Assembly: GCF_036321535.1 (NCBI RefSeq)
Contig: NC_087444.1
Span: forward strand, 14,384,001 to 14,448,000
Source of the DNA: Camelus dromedarius
Lineage: Eukaryota
Reading direction: 5' to 3'
DNA: 64,000 nucleotides
The first letter of the stretch is position 1. The number at the start of each line of letters is the position of its first letter. Positions 21 through 30,800 of this stretch are shown piece by piece. The notes under the pieces are model-generated. The model saw nothing but the letters and a program-made list of their open reading frames with translations. It had not been told where the DNA came from and ran no database searches. The translations under genes were made by a program, and so were the position numbers.

Positions 21-3000
21 CTGAAAAGAAAGACATACCCCATATTATTTACAGACCAAAAAGTCCTTATTTTTGGAAGCCATTACTTAGTTTCCAGACC
101 GGCCAAGTCTTACAGTCATTAAGTTGCTGCTTCTAGCTTATACCATCCTTTGCTTCAATCAAATCTTAATCATGAGTAAGAATAGAATCACTCTTTTTAA
201 AATTTCTGGACCACCCTTNNNNNNNNNNNNNNNNNNNNNNNNNNNNNNNNNNNNNNNNNNNNNNNNNNNNNNNNNNNNNNNNNNNNNNNNNNNNNNNNNN
301 NNNNNNNNNNNNNNNNNNNNNNNNNNNNNNNNNNNNNNNNNNNNNNNNNNNNNNNNNNNNNNNNNNNNNNNNNNCCGCCGTTAACCCTCACGCGGTGAGG
401 AAGGATACGTTTTTTAATAAGACTGTGGATTTTCTGAGTTTTATACACTCACAGAATGAGTCACACATAATGGAAGCACTGCCCATAGTTGGCATATGGA
501 AAACATAAGAGAAGACTTCGGCCTGATGCTTCAGGAACATCACTCCAACTTTTGCCAAACCACCTGCCCTTGGCTGACTTTCTGGTTTGATTAACTTCCG
601 TGTTCCTTACCTTCCCCCACAGACGTATTTCTTCACAATGAGCACTCCTGCTACGACTGTGACCAGCATCAATCCCACAGTTGCCAGGATAATTGGAACA
701 GAATTCGACTTGGAATTCTTGATAAATTAAAACACAAACACAAATAATTTTGGGCGTGCATATTCCAGGACTGAGTTCAAAAAAGAGGCTACTCATTTCC
801 CTCACTTCTCTGTTGAATGTGTGATCTGCATTCTCTAGGAACTTAGTGATGATACTTTTCCAACCCCCCCATCTCGGTGCTACCAGGAGAGTGTCACAGC
901 TGGCAGAGGACCTCAGCTGCCTTGAAGCTGTCAGAACGGTGCAGACTCAGGGGCTCCAATGTCAAAGTTACACTGAAAGCCTTGGCAACTGCCTAGATCA
1001 AATGGTAACTGTGACTGTTCCCCACTACCACTGTTCATAAGTCCTGGAGCTTTAAAAGGTGGAGCAGGAAAGGGAGACTATGATAATAAGTGGGCTGAAT
1101 GAATCTAGAACAGGGCCATTACCTGGGAAGAGGCTGTGCCAATGCTATGTCAGGGAGGCCATCCTATGACACCAAGATTTATTTTTTACTTAATTTTTGG
1201 TATATTCTTATATATAAGCTTTTTCATATCATTGTTTGAGTGTGACCTACCTGCTTCTGGGTGGGAGATAGGGAGTGTGTGTTTTCAATGAATCCAAGAG
1301 GAGGCGGAGCTGGATTCTGGGACAAGTTGTGTCCCTGTGGGCGGGAGTCCTGTGCAATCACACACACAAACACTCTGAGGACAGCCACCAGGAGTGCAGG
1401 GCGGGGATGCAGATGAGGAGGAACTTGCCCCCCTGACAAATACACACACCAACACATTCTTCTCCCACTGCCTTCTTAATCCCACCCCTCTTCAGGCCCT
1501 TACCCCTTGGAAGGTTAAATAGGAGGGGACTGCAGATTGTCCACCTCTCAATTCCCAGATTAGGAAACTGGGGCCCACAGTTTACTGCCCCAAGTCACAC
1601 TGCTGGCCCAGTGCTTCTCTATCAAGAGGTCCCCTCTTTACCATATCCCAGCCAGATAGCTCACTGCTACAGATGTGTCATCAGCCCCAAAACTTGCCTC
1701 TAAATCAAAACCAGCCCATTATTACCATAGTTGAGGTTTTCATTCTGAACACACTTGGCATAACTAGGCAGAGATCTGCCCTACCGATGGTCTGCTGCTC
1801 TTCCACATGTGTGAGAAAGACTCCAGGGCTTTACAGCCACACTTCTTGAGTCTTTCCTACATGACTCCGGGTCTCAGAAATTTCCTCAACCCTATGCTTC
1901 TAAGACTTGGAAAAACTTCACTGAATACCATTTTTTTCCACAACAAAAAAGTTTTCAGTAGATGAGCTTATCATCAGGTTATGTGATCCATCCTTCATCC
2001 TAACAGTTTCTGCGTGAAGGGAAGCCTGACAGAGGCAGTCTGGCCACTTGTATTCAGTAATAAGGTTCTTGATGCTGCATCTTGACTACTCCTGGCAGAA
2101 CATGAAACCCCACTGGTACCTAAACCAGACCTACTTTAACATACCTGCTTTTCTGGACTCAGAAAGTTGCTCGTGCATTTCTTTTTCAAGTCTTTTACTT
2201 CCCGAGCTGGACTCACTCCACCCTGGCATCTGTCTCCTGGAATTTTACGGTATCTGAGCGGCAGAGAAAATTTGTTAACAGAATACAAGGATGTACTCCT
2301 GGACTCTTGCTTACTTCCTGAAAATAAGATTTGACAAGCTACAGAAAGGCTTCTGGTCCTTACACTATCTTCCAGGCCTTGGGGGAGATCCACAGGGATG
2401 TTTTGGGGATATTCTGTATAGTTTCAGCCCTTGGACAGACCACACATCCCTTGCCTTGCTGCAGGGACATACTGCCTTTCTGCCTTGAGAAACTGTGCCA
2501 AAGAACTGTGACCTGGGGAAAGCATGTCAACTTGTGGGACAAAAGAGGGAGAGAGGAGTGTTTATGGGGGGCAGGCAGTGAGGCTCCTCTAGAGCAGCAC
2601 TGTCTACTATGGGGGTTATTTACATTTAAATCAATCAAAATTATCTCTGTTCCTCAGTCACACTAGTGTCAGTAGCCACACAGGGTTAGTGGCTACCGTA
2701 ACAGACATAGATTTCAGAACATTTCCACCATCACAAAGGGCTCTATTAGGCAGTATTTTTCTAGCGTGCTCTCCACCGGGGCTCAGATCTGTGTGGAGAG
2801 AAGCAGCTTTCACTGTGCCCGGTGGACACCCAGCCATCTCACCCGTTTGTCGTCAGGTGCTCTTCTCTCCCATACAGACAAAACTCCAGGTCGTGGCCCT
2901 TCAGCTCTGGCTGTTCCACACACTTGGAGTCATTTTCTGGACGGAAGTAGCCAAAATCACTGCAAGAATCAGCAAAGAAGGTATCTTTCAAAGTTGCTAA

Positions 3001-6000
3001 AAGACAGGAAGTGACTAGCAAAGAAGGTTTTATGTGGGACAGTGCATGGTTAATATTCCAGAAGGCAGCTCAGGAAGGCCTGTGACATACAAAGAGGTCT
3101 GTTTAGGAAGAAACACACACATGGAGAGGGCTTAATTGAGGGAACAACAGCTTATGTTTTGGGCCTGGTGGTCTTGACTCAGCAACCAGGAGTGCTGCAC
3201 AGACCGCCCAGGCTCCGGGAAGGGAAAGAGTGCAGCCTGCAGGGGGTGGGGGCCCACAGAACTAAGACACAGAGAAACAGGGCGTCAGCAACAGATCTGA
3301 ACTCAGGGACACTTAGCAATTCTTCTGTTTACCTCCAAATAACTTGTTATGTTACACCCATGAGGTGCGAGTCACCCCTTCCCCATTTCTGTGTCCCTTT
3401 TAGCTTCTCAGATGGTCCCTGCCTCCAATGTGGATGACCTTTCCTGCCCTCCACTCCATCCCATCTCTCCACAGTGCCACCCATCTGCTCTCCTTCCTCT
3501 GCTTTCTGCAGAGTGACATACCGCCTCCTCTCCAAGGCTGAGCCCCCGACAAGAGCAGCCTCAGCCCCATCCTCCTGACTGCCCCAAGGCCTTGCTTCAG
3601 TGACAGTGTGGGAGGGACCCCCAGCCCCACTCACCCAGTGGCTTCTCCTTAGCTGGCATCTATCCTCTTCCTTCACCATCCTCTCCCTTACTGGCCAAAT
3701 TTCTTTAAAAATATTTGTAACTTGTTCTGTTCTACTCATTTACTTTTTATTCTGTGCATTTGAAATTCACCCTACCCCCGCAACCTTGAAAATGAATGTC
3801 TGAGGCACCCCAGGGCTCGCCAGTTATACAACCTAGGGGGCTCTGTCTTGTTCACCTTGACCACCTGGTTCCGGGGCACCCGGCACACTGCTGTGCCCCG
3901 ACCCACCACAGCCCTGCAAAGCTGCACTTGTCTGTTTCTCTGGTCACTGTTTGCTCTGCTCGCTTCCTACCCAACACAGGCAGGTGTTCTCCAAGATCCT
4001 ATAATTCATTTTCTTACTCTATTCTGTTCTCCCTTTGTGAACTTAACTATTTGTTACAACTAAAGCTTCTAGGTTTTACCTCTCTTGAGCTCTACTCCTA
4101 TACTGCCAAATACCTGCTAGACATCATCACCAAAATCTGCTGATAGAACCTCAAATAAATAAAATGTTCAAAACGCATCATGTTTCCTCCTTTGTGCCAG
4201 CCTCTACTGTCATTTTCTTATGTCTGTCCATGACACTACCTTCCTTTCCACCATCTAATTTGGAAACTTAGCCTGAGCATCCCCCTTCTGGACCCACTCA
4301 CTTCTTTATCATGACCACTGTGATTTCCCCTCATGGCCTATCTTCCAGCACACCCTTCCTGATCACACTGTTGGGTGTCGAAACTCACATCAGTCCACTG
4401 GCTTTAATGAACTGCTTGTTCCCAGATGTGCATGGTCAAATCTTACGGCTCATCAGGGCTCAGCTCAAAAGCCACTTCCTTGACAAAGCCTTTGACCCAC
4501 CTCCTTTCAGCTCTGGATGGAATAGCCTCTCCCTTCTCTAAATCCCCAAGGCACTTACCACCTCTGTTTCCAACACAATTATTTGCATCTTACCAGGAGA
4601 GTCTCTAACAAACATCCTGTTATCACTTTTTGTTGCCCTGTGCACAGCAAGTATTCAGTGAATGTTTGGTGAATGTATAGATGCTGCTTGTACTTCAAGG
4701 TTTTCTGGCAAGTATTTAGGGGAGAGGGTAGGGAAAACAAAAAGATACAGGAGACATCATCCTGCCAATAGCAGGGAGAAACTTCCAGTAGGAAGTTTAC
4801 CCGTTCAATCCAAAATTTCAGGGACCGTACCCTTCCCACTCACAAGGTACACATTTCTCAAGCACATGTGCAGAAGCAGCAGCACGTGCAGAGGCATGCG
4901 GCTCTGAAGAAGCACAGCATGCTTGGCCAACGGCAGAAGCTCAGGTAATTAAGACCCTCGCCTCAGTGCAGTTAAGGATCAGAGTTTCACAGTATCAACC
5001 AGCTCTAGCCCTGCTGTGACATCAAAGTAATCTGAGTGATACTTTCCCCTGTGGAAGTACAGGAGGAAGGACCCCTGGCCATTCCACATACAGATATGAG
5101 CCAGACAGGAGGAAACATGCTGGGTCAGACTTGGGGTTTTGCTCAGTCTCATGTTCTCTGTCACCTGCAGTTCAGAAGAATATGATGTGGGAGGACAGGA
5201 CTGCTATTTGCCGGCTCTCTTTTCCAAATCCTTCAGCTTTCTTTTCCAAATCCATTTTTTATCCTTTGCAGGTAACAAGTTCCATAAGATTACTACCTGT
5301 GATGTGAAGAAGCTCCTCTTACTGACACTGCTACCAGGCTACCCAGGGACTCTCTTCCCTTTGCAAAATCAACTAACCCTATGCCAGCCAAGTAACTAAT
5401 CCTTAAGCCTGGATGGTCCTGAACTCTAGGGAGTCCACCATGATGGCCTGTAAGCATTGATGGGACATATGGACCATACACAGTGATGCCATCTCCTCTC
5501 AGGACAGAACCACACGCTCTCTGCTCAGTCTTACAGACAACCCCAAACCTAGCGCCCTACCTGCTGAACTCAGGCTGTCAGGCTGTTTGCTGAAGTCCAG
5601 TTTCCTCTTAGCTCCTGTACCACTTTTCTTGGTGCTTCTGTCCTATCACCTTCTCTCTCTCTACTTTTTTATTCTCTCCTCCTTATATACCTCTCTCCTT
5701 GCCACCATGGCCAAGTCAGGATTTCTGGGGGTTGTTGCTGGTTCTCCACATTAATAAGCTGCCTGACATGATAATATAATCTGTCCAATTATTAACAACT
5801 TTGTTTCCCTTTCTCTGCACCTCAATTTCCTTAACAAGAAAGCAACGGTTCTCCACTCTTGAGCAAGAAGGGGAATAAAAGGATTTAAATGTTTTTCAAC
5901 TGTCTTTCGCCTCCTCCAGCACAGGAAGAGGCTGACAGGGGTCTGAGGGATGCTGGTACCAGAGGAAGTCCTCCAGGGAGCAGGGACAGACGGATGGCTG

Positions 6001-9000
6001 TTTGGTCACAACATAGTCCCGACCATTCTGGCAGACGGATGACTTGCGGAGCCGCAGGTACTGTTCTTTATAGCCTAAAATGCAGCCATCTCCATAATCT
6101 CCAGGGTCTGTGGAGTGAGCCAACCATATGGTATAGTCCTTCTCTTCACCTAAAGGAAAGATAGGCTGTTCAGGAAACTGCATGGCACAGACTCCACCCA
6201 CGTGAGGCAGCTGCCAGGCTACAGGGAGAACAAGGAGAGGGAAAGTGGGGATGTCTGACTTGCTTCCTTTAGGAACTGCTCATGAGAGTTCCATTAGCGG
6301 GAGCCTACTAGCAACTGGCATTTCCTCATGACTAAGAACAAGTTTTTGATCTCGCCATCCATTTGAGTTTTAGGAAAAACCTTATTTATTTTGAAGAGGG
6401 AAGCTGGATAGAAAACCTCTAAGGTTTCTTCCACACTGAGAGGCTGCTGTCTTTAATTCTTATACACCTGTGCCCTCGGTTAGCGGGAGCTGTCAGAGGT
6501 AAGCAATTAGATGTTTGCTCTTAGGACAAGATATCAATTAGCCAAAAGCATGGATTTAATTTCACCATTGGTTAGTTTGCTTCAAACAGAAGGGAACACA
6601 TTCTCTTTCTAGACTTCTAACTCTTGCTGACTGGCTTTCAAATGAAGACTGTTGATGACAGTCAACCTGGCTTAGTATATCATACCATCCACTCCTGGAA
6701 AAATGACTCAAAGACTACGGCCTAAAGATTGTGGATGAGGTTTTTATTCTTCAGGATAGGAATACCAGCACAGAGCCCGTTAAAGAGCAGGTGCTTAACA
6801 AATCTTTTAATGATGTTAAACTTCAGGGATAACTGTAGAGCTGCCTGCTGAGGGGAAAACTCATAGGCCAGCTCCTTTACAGCCTATTTAGGGAATTTAG
6901 ATAATAATGAGGCTCCAGTTTTAAATCATGTTGAAACATCTTGTAGAAGAGTAACGTCCACACTGAGAGCTTCTGCTTCCTGCAGGAGTCACTGAATTGA
7001 CATGCTGAGGAAATAGGGCCCTAATACAGTCTCATAATGGTCAGGACCAAAATTCAAACAAAGCGTCTCGAAACTTTTGGTCTTCTACCGTATTATGCCA
7101 AATAAGAAACTACGGGTCACAGGTAGTCACTTTTTCTCCAGTTTTTTCTTTTATCCTCCATATTTTCAGTACAATGTCAACATCTTTGGTACTGGGCACC
7201 TGGGTTTGCTTGTGATTCTTTAGGAACACCTTGCAATAAATACTTTAACTCCTTTCTGAAGTCATTTTCTGGGCCTTTAACATGTCTTCAAGTTTGAAGT
7301 CACAGCATTCGGAAATGGTCAGTGTGGGCTTCACGCCTGCTCAGTAGCCAGACTAGAGCCTCACCCGTGACTGATGTTCAAGCCAAACTCTGCACGGAAA
7401 CTTCCTCACTTCAACATGTTGATAAGTGGCACAATCAGTTAGATGCTCTTTGCAACACACTTCCCTCTAAAGTTTCCTCTTTACAGTTCTGCTGTTAATC
7501 AAGGGTGAAAAACCCTGAAGTATTTTGAAATAATTTTAGACAAACATAAACATGCATTATCCTTACAAGCAGAATTCTCAGAAAATGTTACAGAGATCTA
7601 ACAGTGCGAAACTATACTCTCCTATATGTCCACATGTGGCTGGTCTGAACTGAGATTTACTATAAGGGTGAGTGTAAAATATGCACTGGATTTGGAGGAC
7701 TTAGAAAAAAAAGAATGTAAAATATTTCATTAATAATTTTAAGAGGGGAGGGTATATAGCTCAGTGGTAGAGTCCACGCTTAGCATGTACAAGGTCCTGG
7801 GTTCAATCCTCAGTACCTCCATCAAAAAAAAAAAAAAAAATAAAAGACTGTTTAAAAAGTAATAATTTAAAAATATTGCTTACATGTGGAAATAGTATTT
7901 TGGCTATATTGAAATAATTTTATTATTAAAATTAATTTTACCTCTTTTACTTTTATAATGTAGCTAGCTGATAGAAGAATTTAAATTATATATGTAGCCC
8001 TCATTTTACTTCTCTTGGACAGGGCTAATCGAAAGAGAGAAGCTGCTTTTCTGATACCATTCCATTGCCTGCTCACCCACGTGGAACATCCTTCAATTCT
8101 CTCTCATATACATGATTTTCTTATTCCAGCTAGAAGAAATTAAACTCAATTGGTTATTTAGGAAATGGGCTTACAAGTTCCTGATAGGAAAGGTCAAAGG
8201 AGACACTCACAGTTCCTTTCAAGGATGTCTTTAAAATCGATGGTGTAGGAGACCCACTGGCGAGTCAGGAAAGATTCTGTGAAACCCCAGATGCTGATGT
8301 TCATGGACCTGGCTCCAGGTTCCGAAGCCAGGCCGGTAAAGTAGATAGGCTCCCTGGTAAACATGTAGGTTTGCCAGCACTGACCTTCGTCTGTGGAGAA
8401 CCTGAAACCACAGTTAGAGAAAGATCATGACAGAGAATCAACACTATGGGAATATCAGGAAACCACTATGGCTGCTTGATCCCAAATCAGAGAAAAACTC
8501 TCATATTTAGGTGGTGGCTTACTGACTGACAGTTATATTAATTGTTAATGCCTATAGTTAACAGGGAAAAGAGAGAAGGAAAGGGAGGAAGGAAGAAAGA
8601 GGGCGAGAGGGAGGGAGGGGCGAGGGGTGGGGGAGGAAGAATGAGTAAGAAGAAAATGCCTTTTTAATAAAAATTCTTCCAAAGGAAAGAGAGGTTGGTG
8701 ACCCATGTAAGACTGGGCTTCTAAGTCAACAAACAGAAATTACTGAGTAAGAACTTATACTTAAGGAATCAGTTCCCATCCAGAGTGCTCACATGCTTCC
8801 ATAATATTCTTGTGGGGAGAGAGAATATTTTTTTAAAGTGACAAGAAGTGCTAGCTAGAGGGAATTGGAGGAAAAAGTGAAGCCATTTAATTTGAGTTGC
8901 TCTAAACACAATTCCTTCAAGAATCTTCCCCACGGCTCTATAGAATGCACAAATCTGAATCACGGTCTCTAACTTTCCCCCAACAAACTGAAAAACATCC

Positions 9001-12000
9001 CACAGTTGCCCTCTATGCAGACAGTGTGGGTGGAGCTGAGCTCATGCATACTTAATCACATTGATAGGATGGCTGCTGTGTTCAATGGCTACAATGATGC
9101 CCCCTGAATCCAGGATGGTGTAATAGTGGGGTCCTTCCAGCATCTTCAGCCAGGAGTAACCCCCATCATCTGAGATGTACACATCTGGGATCATCACTGA
9201 AATGGCATCCCCCACGCTACCTGCAACACAATCGACCATCTCATCAGCACACATCAGCAGTGAAACAGAGAGGACTTACTGTCAAGAGAAAAATTCTGAA
9301 TGTATTTATTCTGGTTATTTCCCATCACGGCTCTTGTAATAGAAAAAAAGGCCACTGACAATTTGGTACAGGGAATCTTGTTGCTCTCGGATGGGAGTCT
9401 GTGAGAAACCCACAGTATCATTATCTTGCAAGAAACTCTACAGAGGATGGTAAAAGCCACGTATGGTGGTTTTCCCACAGGGTTCAGGGTTCAACGCGAA
9501 GACTGAGTCTCAGCATGCTCAACTACTTCTCCCCGCAGAGGTGCGGGCGGGCTGCTCACCGTGGGCGATGACTATGCCGACAGCGTTAGGCTCTGAGAGT
9601 GGGGCCATTGGAACATTTAGCTTCTGGGAGATGCTGTAGGAAGCATGAATATGAAGGCTGCACTGTGGAAAGAAACCAAAGCTTAGATTAAAATCAAACG
9701 TGTACATTTGTTTTACTCATCTCACAGAGCCTTTTAATAAAGGCTTTCAACTTATTAACCCAGACGTCCGCGTGATACTCTTTAAAAAAAANNNNNNNNN
9801 NNNNNNNNNNNNNNNNNNNNNNNNNNNNNNNNNNNNNNNNNNNNNNNNNNNNNNNNNNNNNNNNNNNNNNNNNNNNNNNNNNNNNNNNNNNNNNNNNNNN
9901 NNNNNNNNNNNNNNNNNNNNNNNNNNNNNNNNNNNNNNNNNNNNNNNNNNNNNNNNNNNNNNNNNNNNNNNNNNNNNNNNTATACACTGGCTACCACCAT
10001 TCTACTTTCCATCTCTGTAAATCTGACCNNNNNNNNNNNNNNNNNNNNNNNNNNNNNNNNNNNNNNNNNNNNNNNNNNNNNNNNNNNNNNNNNNNNNNNN
10101 NNNNNNNNNNNNNNNNNNNNNNNNNNNNNNNNNNNNNNNNNNNNNNNNNNNNNNNNNNNNNNNNNNNNNNNNNNNNNNNNNNNNNNNNNNNNNNNNNNNN
10201 NNNNNNNNNNNNNNNNNNNNNNNNNNNNNNNNNNNNNNNNNNNNNNNNNNNNNNNNNNNNNNNNNNNNNNNNNNNNNNNNNNNNNNNNNNCACTTAAGAT
10301 CCTGCTTTCAGTTCTTTGGGATATATACCCAGAAGTGGAGTGGCTGGATCATATGATAGTTTGACATTTANNNNNNNNNNNNNNNNNNNNNNNNNNNNNN
10401 NNNNNNNNNNNNNNNNNNNNNNNNNNNNNNNNNNNNNNNNNNNNNNNNNNNNNNNNNNNNNNNNNNNNNNNNNNNNNNNNNNNNNNNNNNNNNNNNNNNN
10501 NNNNNNNNNNNNNNNNNNNNNNNTCTTGCAAATCACATTTTTTGATTTGCATTTCCCTAATAATTCGTGATACTGAGCATCTTTTCATGTGCTTACTGGC
10601 CATTAGTATATTTTCTTTAGAGAAGGGTCTATTCAAGTCCTTTGCCCATTTTAAATTTGAGTTATTTGGTTTTTTTGTTGACTTACAGGCTCAGTGAGAT
10701 ATTCTTGATTCTGAAATGCATTAGTGTACTTGGAGGAAGCAAATTATGCAATTATCTTCTCATGTGTAATCTGTCTTAGTTAATTTTATTCCTGCATTAC
10801 ACCAAAGCCCCTGATCAATATTTAAAGCATGACTGCACACAAATAAACTTGATGAATGCCTGACATATTTAAGATACTGTACAAGATGTGGTTGTGATTT
10901 AAAATACTACTCAGTCCTGCCTTTAAGAAATATATCTCAGAAACTAGTTGAGGTATAAAGCAGGATGAAAATGAGTGCTTTACAAGACATTCGAATTGGC
11001 TAAAATGTTAATTTTACGTCATGTATATTTTACTGCAATTTAAAAAACTTCAGGCAACTACTAGTGAAATGAAGAGGGATGACTCATTCTAAGTGGAGGT
11101 GGGCACTAAGGGTGGTTAGGATTTCCACTAATCCTAATGAACTGGGGGGAGGGAAGACAGGCACAACTTCCCCAGGAATAACATGGGCAAGTGGCACATG
11201 CAGGGTGTTCAGGAAGCAGCAGAGGTTACCAGGGGGATGTCAGTGATAAAGCGGGCAATGACAATGAAAAGGCAGGAGAGAACCTGACAGGGGAGGAGGG
11301 GGCCTTTATTCACCAGGTCACAGGCAAAGGGGAACCATGGAGAGAGTTGGGGAGGGAGAGGCATGGACGTGTGATGGTGGCAAGCTAGGTAAAGAGGCCA
11401 TGTACCTGCCCAGGCTTAGGGTGAGGAGGGCAGGCGCAGAACAGGGCCAGGGCGGAGGGATGGGGAAAGGGAAGTAGGAGGGAAGAGAGACTCAACAGCA
11501 CTCCTGAGCACAGAGAAGGGAGAGAGCATGTTGGGGGTGGTGTAGGCACATCTATCTCACACTGAGGCTCTTAGAACAAAACAGAAAGCCCAACCTACAC
11601 AGCAGAGTGCACGTCAGCCACAGGACTCAGAGGAGAGCTTGGAACTCCTAATGCTGTCACTTTTGAAGAAGACTCCCTGGGTTCTGCTAAGCTCCTCTCA
11701 AATTCTATAAGAGCCAGACACAAAGCTTGTTTGTTTTTTCTCTTTCCTTTGCCCGTCAAGACCTGTCACTCATGGAATCTGGGATCTCCTGTAGCAATGC
11801 CTTTGTATTTCTACTTCTCGGTCTCTCCGAGGGGTCAGGTCCTGCTCTCACACGCCACACCGGGTCACCTCCCACACCCACCGGCCACGTAAAACCCTGG
11901 CAGAGGGGAAGAGAGGCCACATTCTCCTCCATCTGTTTCTAGCCAGCACAGCTTTGCATTGCTCATGAATAGCTGGCCTATGGCTTTCTGTAGAATTCCT

Positions 12001-21000: not shown

Positions 21001-23241
21001 AACAAAAGCAGATGCAGCATGCGTATCCTAGTGGTGCTGTGAAAACCTCATTTAACCAGCATTTTCTAAAAAAGAACACTTTACTTAAGCACCATTTTTT
21101 AATATTTCAGTTAATTTTAGTAGACCTTTTTGGCAATGTCTATATTACACATTTTGCTATCTCCCCAAGTAGAGGACATTAAATATTAAACTCCTCCTTG
21201 GGATTACGGTCCATCCTCGTGAACAACAACCATGTGAAAGTGAAACACAGGGTTCCCACTAGAAGTTACAGAGGCACGTGAGCCCTCCTGAAACCGCACT
21301 GGACACTCTGGTCCTGCTGCGCTCTGCCCCTGCCTGCTCTTAGACTTCTTCTGCCTCCCCGCGGCTCCCAGGCAGCAGACTCTCAGTGTGGCCCGTGCTT
21401 GTTGTTCGCACTCACATGCTCCACCTCTAGCAGCAACCTGCTATCCTCTGGGAAACCAGATAGACAAATTTGCTGAAATTAGTCAAAGAGAAAGAAGATG
21501 GAGGCTCTAAACAAGGGTCTGAGCCTAGTCAGAATTTTGGAGGTATAAAGGCCCTTAATTCAATCTGTGCTCAACCATCCCTCAAATAACCATCCCCCAA
21601 ACAAACCTCCTTTCACAGAAGGGAAAAACCAAAGCCCAGAGAGGTTGAGCCACTGACTAGCAGTGGACCCAGGCTAGAACAAAGGGGACCTGACTCCCAG
21701 GTAAGAGCCTCCTGCACGCTATCATCTTTAAGCAGGCACAGGGGTGGCGGGGAGTGAATGAGCTTTGGGGCACAGACGTGTGACTCTGGCAGCCTGGAAG
21801 CTCTGTGAGCTTTTTCGTGATTCCTCACAACATTCCACGTAACTGAAATGGCTCTCCAGATGAGTACATAAGTCCCCAGATCAAAGCTGTATTTTATCGC
21901 AATTGATGTCATCATTTACATAGAATAAACCTTCTGTAGCCAGCAGCTACTCAGTAATGCGCCTTATTTTATACTTTATATACTAACACTTGGCGAGACT
22001 AAGTCTTCTTTCCCAGCGGAATTAGAAGCTCCTCCAGGTCAAGGTCTGTGTCATACCCCTCTCTCGTATCCCTTACCACATCCTGAAGAGTACTTGGCAC
22101 ATAGTAAGTGCTCAATATTTATTCATGTGACTTTTGGCAGCACCGTCAGGAAAGGTTTAGGGCTCTGCANNNNNNNNNNNNNNNNNNNNNNNNNNNNNNN
22201 NNNNNNNNNNNNNNNNNNNNNNNNNNNNNNNNNNNNNNNNNNNNNNNNNNNNNNNNNNNNNNNNNNNNNNNNNNNNNNNNNNNNNNNNNNNNNNNNNNNN
22301 NNNNNNNNNTGTGCAGCTGCTTGTATGACCTTTAATAATTCGTATCCAATCATTCAGGACAGTAAAAACACACACTGAAGTTCCATCCAAGCCTGAGCTC
22401 CACAGACACACACACGGTTTACAGGGGCCCCTTCAGGGTCTTGGAAATTCAGAATGACAAGTGCTTATGAAGTGCCTACTATGTGCCAGGCACTGTACCA
22501 GACGTTGCATTGGGGATACAAAGATGAATAAGACACACTCCCTGCTCTTAAGGAGCTAACAGTTTAACAAGGGGTACAGATTAGAAGCTTTGATACATGT
22601 GGTAAGTATTATGGCAACGCAGTCTCTGGGGTAAGAGTAAGGAAAGGAGGGACATTGCATCAGAGATGTGAAGAAGACAGCTGAACTGAGTCAAATGACG
22701 AGCAGTGTAGCCAAAAGAAGGCAAATGGGGAGATGAGATGTCCCTGCACAAAGACAGACTGGTATCAGCAGAGGCAGAGACGTAGTGAAACATTGCAGTA
22801 TGTGCAGGGAGCTTTGCCTTCAGACACAGATGGAGCACAAATTCCAAGGAGAGGAGAGGAGGAGCCAAACTGGGGACAGAGGTGGGGCCCGCTCATGGAG
22901 AGCCCTCCTTCTATGCTGTGCTGAGGAACCTGGTCTTTATTTTATATGAGGTCCTTAAAGGAGGAGGGTGCACTAAGTAGCTGAATGACAGGCAGCTTTA
23001 GTTTTCTAAGAGGAATACTTGGATGACAATGGCAAAGATGGATTTCAGAGGGTCCAAACTAGGAGCAGGAAAAACAGTGACTAACTGCTACATTAGCTCA
23101 CTAAGAGTTAGTGAGGCCTGAAACCATAGCTGTGAGGAGCAGGCTCAGGAAGAATTTAGAAGCTAGATTCAGTAGAACTAGATGACTTCCTGTAGGGCAG
23201 GATGGAGAGAGAGAGAGACGGAGAGAGAGAGAGTGTGTGTG

Positions 23242-23278
<37 letters not shown>

Positions 23279-27816: not shown

Positions 27817-27853
<37 letters not shown>

Positions 27854-30800
27854 ACACAGAGAAAACCCCTAGACTAATAAAAGGAGGATTAGGTGCCACC
27901 CAACAGATTCCTGCATCACTCTTTCTCGGGCTTTGGAGTACGAGAAGAGTTCTGATCTTCTTGACAGCAGGCCAAGAGATACGCGTAAACAAGTCCTCGC
28001 TCTACAGTGTACATGTCATCCACAGCTCAGTCAACTGCCTAAAGGGTTTTGCAGGGGCTTGATTATCAACAGCTTACAAATCTCCCCTCCTCTGACATCC
28101 CAGGGAACCGCCACAAACCTGTTGGCAAGTCTGCTTCCTTTTAAAGAACTTGGCACAACAAATACATGCCTGCCCTTCAGAAAAAGAAAGCAACAGGAGC
28201 AAAACAAAAAATTGTCTGCTACAACGCTCTGGTGCTCTAGCGAGTGAAATAAGTGGAGCACAGTGGACTAGTACCAACCTGCTAGGATATAAGCAAGCTT
28301 CTGTCGAGGCCACGTGGGGCCCAGGGATATATTTTAACAGAACACCTAATTTTAAAGTAGCTTTTTCTGTCAGCATACATCACACATCATGAAGAGGAAA
28401 TCAACGGAACACCTTAAAAATAAATCACTTTTCAAATTCCATATGATAATTACTATTAATTTGAACAGCAGTCAAATGGTAAGTTAACAAAACCCTGTGA
28501 AACCATCTGCTTTAGAAATAAGTCTCTTTAATAACAATTCAATTTATCAACCCTAATATCTGCTCTTTCTGGTTACCAAAAATAAATGATCACTTTTGCA
28601 TATACCTGTGGTATAAACATGGATAAGAATATGTATGTTTATAATAAAAAATAGTGCTAGGATATAAATATTTTTGGAATAGAGCCTAATATTCCCAAAG
28701 AACAAGAAAAATCTAGACATTATTTAAATAAACAGAAAAAAAGAGAAGTAACCATCACATGGATTTCTGGTAAGATATAGCATCAAAATTCCTAGTAAGA
28801 TGGACTCAGAAGGGTGTTTTTCCAGGAGACTCACATGTTGACTAATGCTCAACCCAAATGTCCATAGCCAGGAATTACATCCTTGTTTTTGAGCACTTTT
28901 CATTTACAATATAGAGGAACTTGTGACACCAGGCATTTGACCTGCAGACATTCAATAAAAAGTAACAGTAAAAGAGTCCTACAATAGCTCAGAGAACCTT
29001 CCATTTTGCTTTCCTTAACAATCAAACAAGCACTGATATCCTTGTTTGTTGGCTTTCAGCATAACCATTTCTCTATTCCTTTAGTTCATTATTGCTGTGA
29101 TTAAATCACTAAAAATTGCAACATAAAATGACAAGAATATCAAAAAACTCTTAAAAAAATTATAGTTTTGTAATTTTCACCAATTGGAAAAGATTACACA
29201 GTCGATCCTCCTTATTCACAGATCCTGTATTTGCGAATCTGCCTACTCACTAAGACTTGTAACCCCCAAATCAATGCTTGGAGCACTTTCATAGTCATTT
29301 GCAGATATGCACAGGGCAGCAAAAAAATCTGAGTCCCCCCGGGGAACAAGTTCCCCACTGAGGTCCAACAAGGGGACGCTGCCTTCTTGTTTCAGCTCTT
29401 ACATGACACCTGAGCATCTTCCTCACGGTCTACTTAGTACAATGCATTTTGCACTTTTGTGCCTTTCGTTGGCGCTTTACTGTTTAAAATTACCCCAAGA
29501 ATAGTGTTGAAATGCTGTTTAGTGTTTCTGGAGAAAATACGTAAGTTGGATAAGCTTCTTTCTGGCATGAGTTAGTTTTGAGCTCAGTGTTAATGAGTCA
29601 ACAATATATATAAGGTATCTTTAAGCAGAAATACACATACAACAGGGTATGTACTGATCAACTGATAAAAATGACCATTGTGACCAGAGGTTTGCAGGAA
29701 CCTAATTCTGTACGTCCCTTAGGAGCAATGGTTCAGTGTTCCCTAATTCAGTATTCCTGGAGACTCTGTAGAACATAACTACTATGAATAATGAGAATTG
29801 ACTGTATTGAGATTTCCAGTTAAATGATCAACAGGGAGAATGTAGCTTATTAAAATGTGCCAAAGGAATCACAGACCTGAAATCACTGCCAGGTAAAATT
29901 GGCAGAACTTGAATTCAAATTCAACTGAACTCTCATTACTTTGGTCTCTTTTCTTACCCCAACTGTCTGTTGCTACCTCATGTGTTTTTATTTTAATTAT
30001 TTCATTGTGTTTTATCCTTATTGGAAAAGGCTGTTCTGTAGAAATTTTGAAAATATAAATGGGAAAATAAAGAAACAAAATATTGTAAATAAAATCACAA
30101 AACTTTTTTATCAGATGGAATATGATCATGATATGGGGTCCGTCCTTTGCTCGGATTGACAACTCTAAGAATATGTATTTTCATGGAAATATTTCTTAAG
30201 TGACAAAAACCACTTAGTTTCATGAGTTTTATATGCCCTAAGTTTGTAAAAGTGAAGTTGTAGTAAAATGTCATCATCATATATTTCAAGAGACTTTTCT
30301 TTAAGAAATAAAAGGCAGGAAAATATATTTTGTAAATGGAATTTATGTTAACCTTGTAACTAAAATATGTAGTCATTGTTAATAATCTACTGCAGTAAAA
30401 AATAAATCAAGTATATCATTAAAAAGGCTGTCATGTGAGGTACCTTGGAGAAGTTGGTTCACTGAACTTTGCTTTAATATCTGTTGTATATATTAAAGTT
30501 ACCCTTTTTTAAAATCTCAAGTAACATCCTGAAAAGCTGACATTGACTATGGAATAAAGTTTAATGTGAAAGAGATTCCCTTATTAACTTCCAAAATATG
30601 AACAACTCTCAACAGGAAATAGGAATCACAAATAAAGTAGCCCAGCAGTTTTATGATAAGTTGGTACAGAATTCTGCTGTAGAATAATGCTAACATGTGC
30701 TTCACTAAGTTAAACTTACAATAAAAAGTTAGACTCAAGGGACCATAAAACAAAAAGGTGCAAAACATCTTTTAGTTTCCAAAAAATCAAATCTTCATCT

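Follow-up and report, generated by a model that had tools for sequence, protein, structure and literature searches.

Does the SORT1 gene of the dromedary contain the alternative exon 17b, and would inclusion of that exon lengthen sortilin, as in mouse, or truncate it, as in human? In ALS/FTD research, SORT1 exon 17b serves as a standard read-out of TDP-43 loss; that its inclusion has opposite effects in mouse and human makes animal models harder to use. Mouse Sort1+ex17b was reportedly treated by Polymenidou in 2011 and Prudencio in 2012. TDP-43 represses the exon; inclusion in mouse adds 33 residues to the luminal stalk (PMC6928728, PMC7863940), whereas inclusion in human adds 10 new residues followed by a stop, yielding a truncated soluble sortilin, Sort_T (PMC10531797, PMC6928728). 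An earlier note on the sequence, which had set out this mouse and human background in agreement with the papers (PMC6928728, PMC10531797, PMC7863940), proposed that an intact coding copy lies in a window of 64,000 nt of Camelus dromedarius DNA, the whole stretch analyzed here.

The gene was identified as sortilin by a Pfam Sortilin_C match at 5899-6279 (E 1e-10). SORT1 exons 15-17 were placed by local tblastn with residues 1-92 of P0010, a rodent-like sortilin fragment, as the query. In the same search exon 17 has 86% identity to residues 57-92 of P0010, and the exon 17 open reading frame weakly matches the last part of the Pfam Sortilin_C profile (positions 135-167 of 167). Exon 17b sits in the SORT1 intron between exon 17, where the 10CC module ends, and the transmembrane exon 18, arranged as follows.

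2253 to 2145, minus strand: SORT1 exon 17, 109 nt; closes the 10CC/Sortilin_C module and ends in phase 0 (...SPEKQ, then gtatgt).
1349 to 1251, minus strand: exon 17b, 99 nt, phase 0-0, 33 codons without a stop; cacag/GACTCC...AAGCAG/gtaggt.
717 to 611, minus strand: SORT1 exon 18, 107 nt; starts in phase 0 (aag/AATTCC) with six stalk residues, followed by the transmembrane helix.

Runs of N, either gaps or masked sequence, occupy 219-374, 9792-9980, 10029-10290, 10371-10523 and 22170-22309 of the window.

The anatomy agrees with what had been described. Intron 17 contains the 99-nt, AG/GT-bounded, phase 0-0, stop-free segment, whose frame 0 is the 33-residue peptide that the earlier note quoted, and the junctions it had proposed, 2145 to 1349 and 1251 to 717, are correct. 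Since exon 17 ends and exon 18 starts in phase 0, inclusion of exon 17b preserves the frame. The exon therefore has the properties of the coding, mouse-type form: no in-frame stop, a length that is a multiple of 3 and an in-frame join to exon 18. It is not a poison exon in this genome, as it brings neither a stop nor a frameshift; that definition would apply to human exon 17b and possibly also to L004, one of the copies compared below. The insert consists of 33 Pro/Ser/Gln-rich residues with one N-L-S glycosylation sequon. The sequon occupies insert residues 8-10 (window 1320-1328, minus strand) and is present in the camelid, dolphin and bat copies and in P0001, and absent (N to S) in the rodent-like copies and L004. 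Two more in-frame AGs lie inside exon 17b, at 1334 and 1316 (minus strand), and would define 84-nt and 66-nt versions with the same donor; the AG at 1334 is preceded by a C-rich run and could be an alternative acceptor.

The open frame is not what identifies the exon. In the 1428 nt of intron 17 there are 51 segments of 60-200 nt that are AG..GT-bounded, in phase 0-0 and free of stops. Frame 1 of exon 17b is likewise open, and the frame-0 opening extends beyond the exon into the intron by 126 nt upstream and 24 nt downstream. Given 51 comparable segments and an open frame that spills into the intron, the open AG/GT-bounded state is not beyond chance. Eight of the nine donor consensus positions are matched by only three candidates, all of which share the donor at 1251. 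It could be argued that exon 17b is a chance pseudo-exon, an intronic open AG..GT segment that is spliced in no species, as the 51 similar segments in the same intron and the absence of RNA support for exon 17b in this species would allow. That reading is effectively refuted by three observations: published exon-17b primers match the segment, its conservation far exceeds the intron background, and spliced 17b-containing products are recorded in at least four other taxa. Judged from these comparisons, the reality of exon 17b is established by orthology and conservation, not by its open frame.

The published primers provide the most direct link to the known exon. The human Sort_T primers (PMC10531797) align at offsets 25 (2/22 mismatches) and 74 (1/21 mismatches) of the exon, their best matches in the entire window. 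The mouse exon-17b primer (PMC7863940) matches 19/20 nt of the segment, a single mismatch, again at its best position in the window. The length also agrees, as exon 17b is 99 bp in both the human and the mouse papers (PMC10531797, PMC7863940). The assignment of the segment as the SORT1 exon 17b ortholog, made in the earlier note from the sequence, is thereby confirmed.

Searches for other copies revealed exon 17b in spliced products and in unspliced DNA. A phmmer search with the 33-residue query against 1.84 billion representatives returned six matches, and word-index searches added others. Four of the products join exon 17b to the downstream exons.

P0001: product called on a Logan-assembled contig of 1558 nt; last five exon 17 residues, 17b and exons 18-20 to the natural C-terminus.
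P0008: Logan product, muroid-like; exon 17, 17b and exons 18-20 in frame.
P0005: NCBI 'sortilin 1 [Phyllostomus discolor]', a partial model of 152 residues; exon 17, 17b and exons 18-20.
P0009: 'Sortilin 1 [Molossus molossus]' model; 17b joined to exons 18-20.

P0008 is called muroid-like from its exon-17 peptide, which fits the mouse exon-17 primer, and P0010 is the 17b-skipped form, apparently of the same species. GenBank bat gene models do contain exon 17b. The remaining matches, P0002, P0003, P0004, P0006 and P0007, are unspliced open reading frames on host DNA contigs, and these contigs yielded loci L001-L007. As annotated, they are 'proteins' of 74-129 residues that correspond to the intronic open frame through exon 17b (window 1227-1475, minus strand); such reading frames, called from assembled reads or metagenomes, are host-DNA artefacts in protein collections.

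Six DNA copies were compared: the window, dolphin, a bat-like copy, two rodent-like copies and L004. The dolphin copy, L001, comes from ERR13362599, a PacBio HiFi genomic run of the Atlantic white-sided dolphin (PMC13157609), and has an intact open 99-nt exon 17b. L003 encodes the same 17b peptide as Phyllostomus discolor, L002 and L005 have substitutions in common with the rodent-like P0008, and the window clusters with dolphin in a tree of the intron. The species sample is small and partly biased towards open copies, as most were found via open reading frames. DNA-pattern scans of metagenome contigs found no further copies. Compared with the window, L005 has about 200 nt inserted downstream of exon 17b (L005:864-1070), probably a repeat specific to that lineage; when the relatives' loci, this insertion included, were scanned with Rfam for lineage-specific SINE-like RNAs, no match was obtained.

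Exon 17b and its immediate flanks are conserved above the rest of the intron. Between the window and five other mammals the exon has 87-96% identity; its divergence is 4-7.5%, compared to 11-32% for the remaining intron 17 background, a difference with Fisher p values from 0.048 (dolphin) to 1e-6. The flanking blocks are the following.

1350 to 1399, minus strand: conserved intronic block, the 3' splice site region; 0-3 differences per 50 nt (0-6%) against five mammals.
1226 to 1250, minus strand: donor gtaggt and conserved downstream block; the donor matches 8/9 consensus positions, including the last exon bases 1251-1253.

For the upstream 50 nt, Fisher p values against the intron background range from 0.008 to 7e-5, and the 25 nt downstream of the exon have 0-20% divergence, i.e. 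80-100% identity, across the same five mammals. The acceptor AG and the gtaggt donor are kept in all six copies. Exon 17b has conserved flanks, and its synonymous sites are as constrained as the nonsynonymous ones, which is the general signature of a conserved, regulated alternative exon.

The sequence elements that may be relevant to splicing are listed here.

1359 to 1373, minus strand: UG-rich tract GUGUUUGUGUGUGUG where a polypyrimidine tract would normally lie, 10-24 nt upstream of the acceptor.
1442 to 1455, minus strand: second UG-rich tract GUGUUGGUGUGUGU, about 95 nt upstream of exon 17b; partly conserved.
1275 to 1282, minus strand: exonic CA repeat ACACACAC inside GAAAACACACAC, an hnRNP L-type motif, invariant in 6/6 sequences.

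The tract at 1359-1373 is retained in 6/6 species copies, and (TG)5 occurs at only three sense-strand loci within the 64-kb window. By its motif and position, it is a candidate TDP-43 binding site. Known repressors of exon 17b are TDP-43, hnRNP L, PTB and hnRNP A1/A2 (PMC6928728, PMC10057836), and the control of the exon by TDP-43 and hnRNPs is documented further in PMC10567115. hnRNP L, a binder of CA-rich elements, regulates SORT1 17b splicing (PMC10057836) and may bind the exonic repeat at 1275-1282. Longer (TG)n/(CA)n microsatellites are found in upstream SORT1 introns, at 23246-23273 (plus strand) and 27819-27858 (minus strand). Pairing between the UG tract and the CA repeat, as predicted with RNAalifold, has no compensatory pair and a single-sequence z-score of -1.45, and was rejected as evidence.

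A mechanism consistent with these elements can be proposed. Exon 17b combines a strong donor with a weak 3' splice site, in which the UG-rich tract replaces the polypyrimidine tract. If control is as in mouse and human, binding of TDP-43 to the UG tract and of other hnRNPs, hnRNP L among them, to the CA repeat would keep the exon mostly skipped. Inclusion would extend the luminal juxtamembrane stalk by 33 residues, as a presumably disordered Pro/Ser/Gln-rich segment. The insert would end six residues ahead of the transmembrane helix, with the helix and the cytoplasmic tail kept in frame, so the predicted inclusion product is a full-length membrane receptor, as in mouse, and not the human truncation.

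Why the human product differs can be traced to a single codon.

1317 to 1319, minus strand: codon 11 of exon 17b, CAG (Gln), where the human exon has an in-frame TAG.

Codon 11 is CAG in 6/6 DNA copies, and the human primer (PMC10531797) differs by C>T, reading TTG TCC TAG where the window and the five other DNA copies read TTG TCC CAG. The codon is also open in all ten 17b peptides recovered, and a search for truncated, primate-type open reading frames ending at codon 10 found none. Given CAG in artiodactyls, bats and the rodent-like copies, and the reported read-through of 33 residues in mouse, a single primate-side C>T is the parsimonious history. On this comparison, exon 17b of the boreoeutherian ancestor was open and 99 nt long, and the human stop derives from a single C>T at exon nt 31, which changed CAG to TAG at codon 11. 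This result bears out the suggestion in the earlier note of an ancestral open form and a derived human stop.

One of the copies departs from the open form. L004 (L004:173-264, run SRR23625869), known from one short-read contig, has a 1-nt deletion at the first exon base (cacag/ACTCC) and two 3-nt deletions. With the same splice sites, L004 would have a 92-nt exon that is not in frame. Inclusion would then shift the frame and lead to a stop in exon 18, barring use of an in-frame alternative acceptor 15 nt downstream. Frequent frameshifts or stops in related artiodactyls had been named as grounds for refutation, being signs of neutral drift; a frame-breaking 1-nt deletion was observed once, in L004. 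L004 may represent a second truncating lineage, independent of human, as judged from this one contig. A broader proposal is that exon 17b is a eutherian-wide cassette maintained by constraint on nucleotides and splicing control, and not on its peptide, that was made truncating independently at least twice, by CAG>TAG in human and by the acceptor deletion in L004. We consider this unlikely. If it is true, evolution would have arrived at a soluble, decoy-type sortilin repeatedly, and the human form would be no oddity.

The conservation of exon 17b raises the question of what is being conserved. The earlier note had suggested that the coding form is under selection. The exon is conserved above the intron background, but its non-coding flanks are as well, and selection on the coding form is not borne out. 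The five full-length DNA copies vary at 12 columns, distributed 5/5/2 over codon positions 1/2/3; the changes are nonsynonymous in 10 of these columns and synonymous in 2, and pN/pS between pairs of copies is 0.9-1.6. With site counts of S ~24 and N ~75, the pattern rejects any omega up to 0.2 (P = 0.002) and, at about 5%, an omega of 0.4; omega 1 fits. The absence of stops is not evidence of selection either, since only 9 of the 297 possible single substitutions in exon 17b create a stop and 12 random changes would avoid one with P = 0.69. The constraint looks to be at the nucleotide level and on splicing control, to judge from the UG tract and the invariant CA repeat. The claim of selection is only partly supported: the exon is conserved, and the 33-residue peptide carries no sign of selection at the protein level.

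A rival explanation is that the block would be conserved for RNA-level reasons only and that the peptide would have no selected function. Exon 17b would then be a splicing-control module, comprising the UG tract, the CA repeat and decoy-like splice sites, and its inclusion from time to time would tune sortilin output. The open frame would have survived simply because substitutions have been few. The non-coding flanks, conserved at least as well as the exon, fit this explanation, as do the 5/5/2 codon-position split, the pN/pS values and the rejection of omega below 0.4 at 5%, along with the expected no-stop outcome. A truncating version is also tolerated in human (the stop) and in L004 (the frameshift). 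However, the 17b peptide is about as conserved as the exon 17 peptide, with 4/33 and 5/36 differences, respectively, between the camelid and the bat or rodent-like copies. The length is exactly 99 nt in 5/6 DNA copies, and 2/3 of the indels in L004 are 3 nt. Mouse Sort17b protein is made and binds partners (PMC7863940), and the sample is too small to tell an omega of 1 from one of about 0.5. On balance, a purely RNA-level explanation is possible, but we give it somewhat less than an even chance. The lack of a protein-level selection signature and the frame-broken L004 call for caution in viewing the 33-residue insert as a selected functional module.

Sequencing runs provide little on splicing in the dromedary itself. 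No RNA-recorded run matching exon 17b alone was found. With 600-2270 as the query, RNA runs cover about 90% of the stretch, the intron included, which reflects pre-mRNA or DNA and is uninformative on splicing. The reading preferred here, with a probability of about 0.85, is that 1251-1349 (minus strand) is the SORT1 exon 17b ortholog in its ancestral open form with the mouse-type outcome. It draws on the anatomy, orthology and conservation of the exon, on its continuous frame and on in-frame spliced products of other species, each observed in this analysis. We infer from these that the exon would be included, and repressed by TDP-43, in this species, and that the protein would be altered as proposed above.

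The dromedary exon can be placed among known systems on this basis. Like mouse Sort1 exon 17b (PMC7863940, PMC10567115), it lies in the same intron, is 99 nt long and encodes a 33-residue in-frame insert ahead of the transmembrane helix. TDP-43 repression and the protein have been shown in mouse and are predicted for the dromedary exon. The rodent-like copies differ from the window at about 4/33 residues and have lost the N-L-S sequon through N8S. Human SORT1 exon 17b is likewise an orthologous 99-nt exon, whose primers match 20/22 and 20/21 nt of the window. Unlike in human, where TAG at codon 11 produces a secreted receptor without the transmembrane helix, CAG in the window reads into exon 18. 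Control of CFTR exon 9 acts via a UG repeat at the 3' splice site. Exon 17b would be similar to this TDP-43 target (PMC4605304) in having a UG run directly upstream of the acceptor of a TDP-43-skipped exon. CFTR is another gene, the resemblance is one of mechanism only, and the TDP-43 site here is a candidate.

Finally, the feature is real and ordinary. An alternative exon that is well known from mouse and human has its ortholog here, and the ortholog keeps the ancestral open form. Because the open form is present in artiodactyls, bats and rodents and the human C>T is derived, the truncated decoy would have arisen on the human lineage after the split from rodents. Most mammals would therefore model the mouse outcome.
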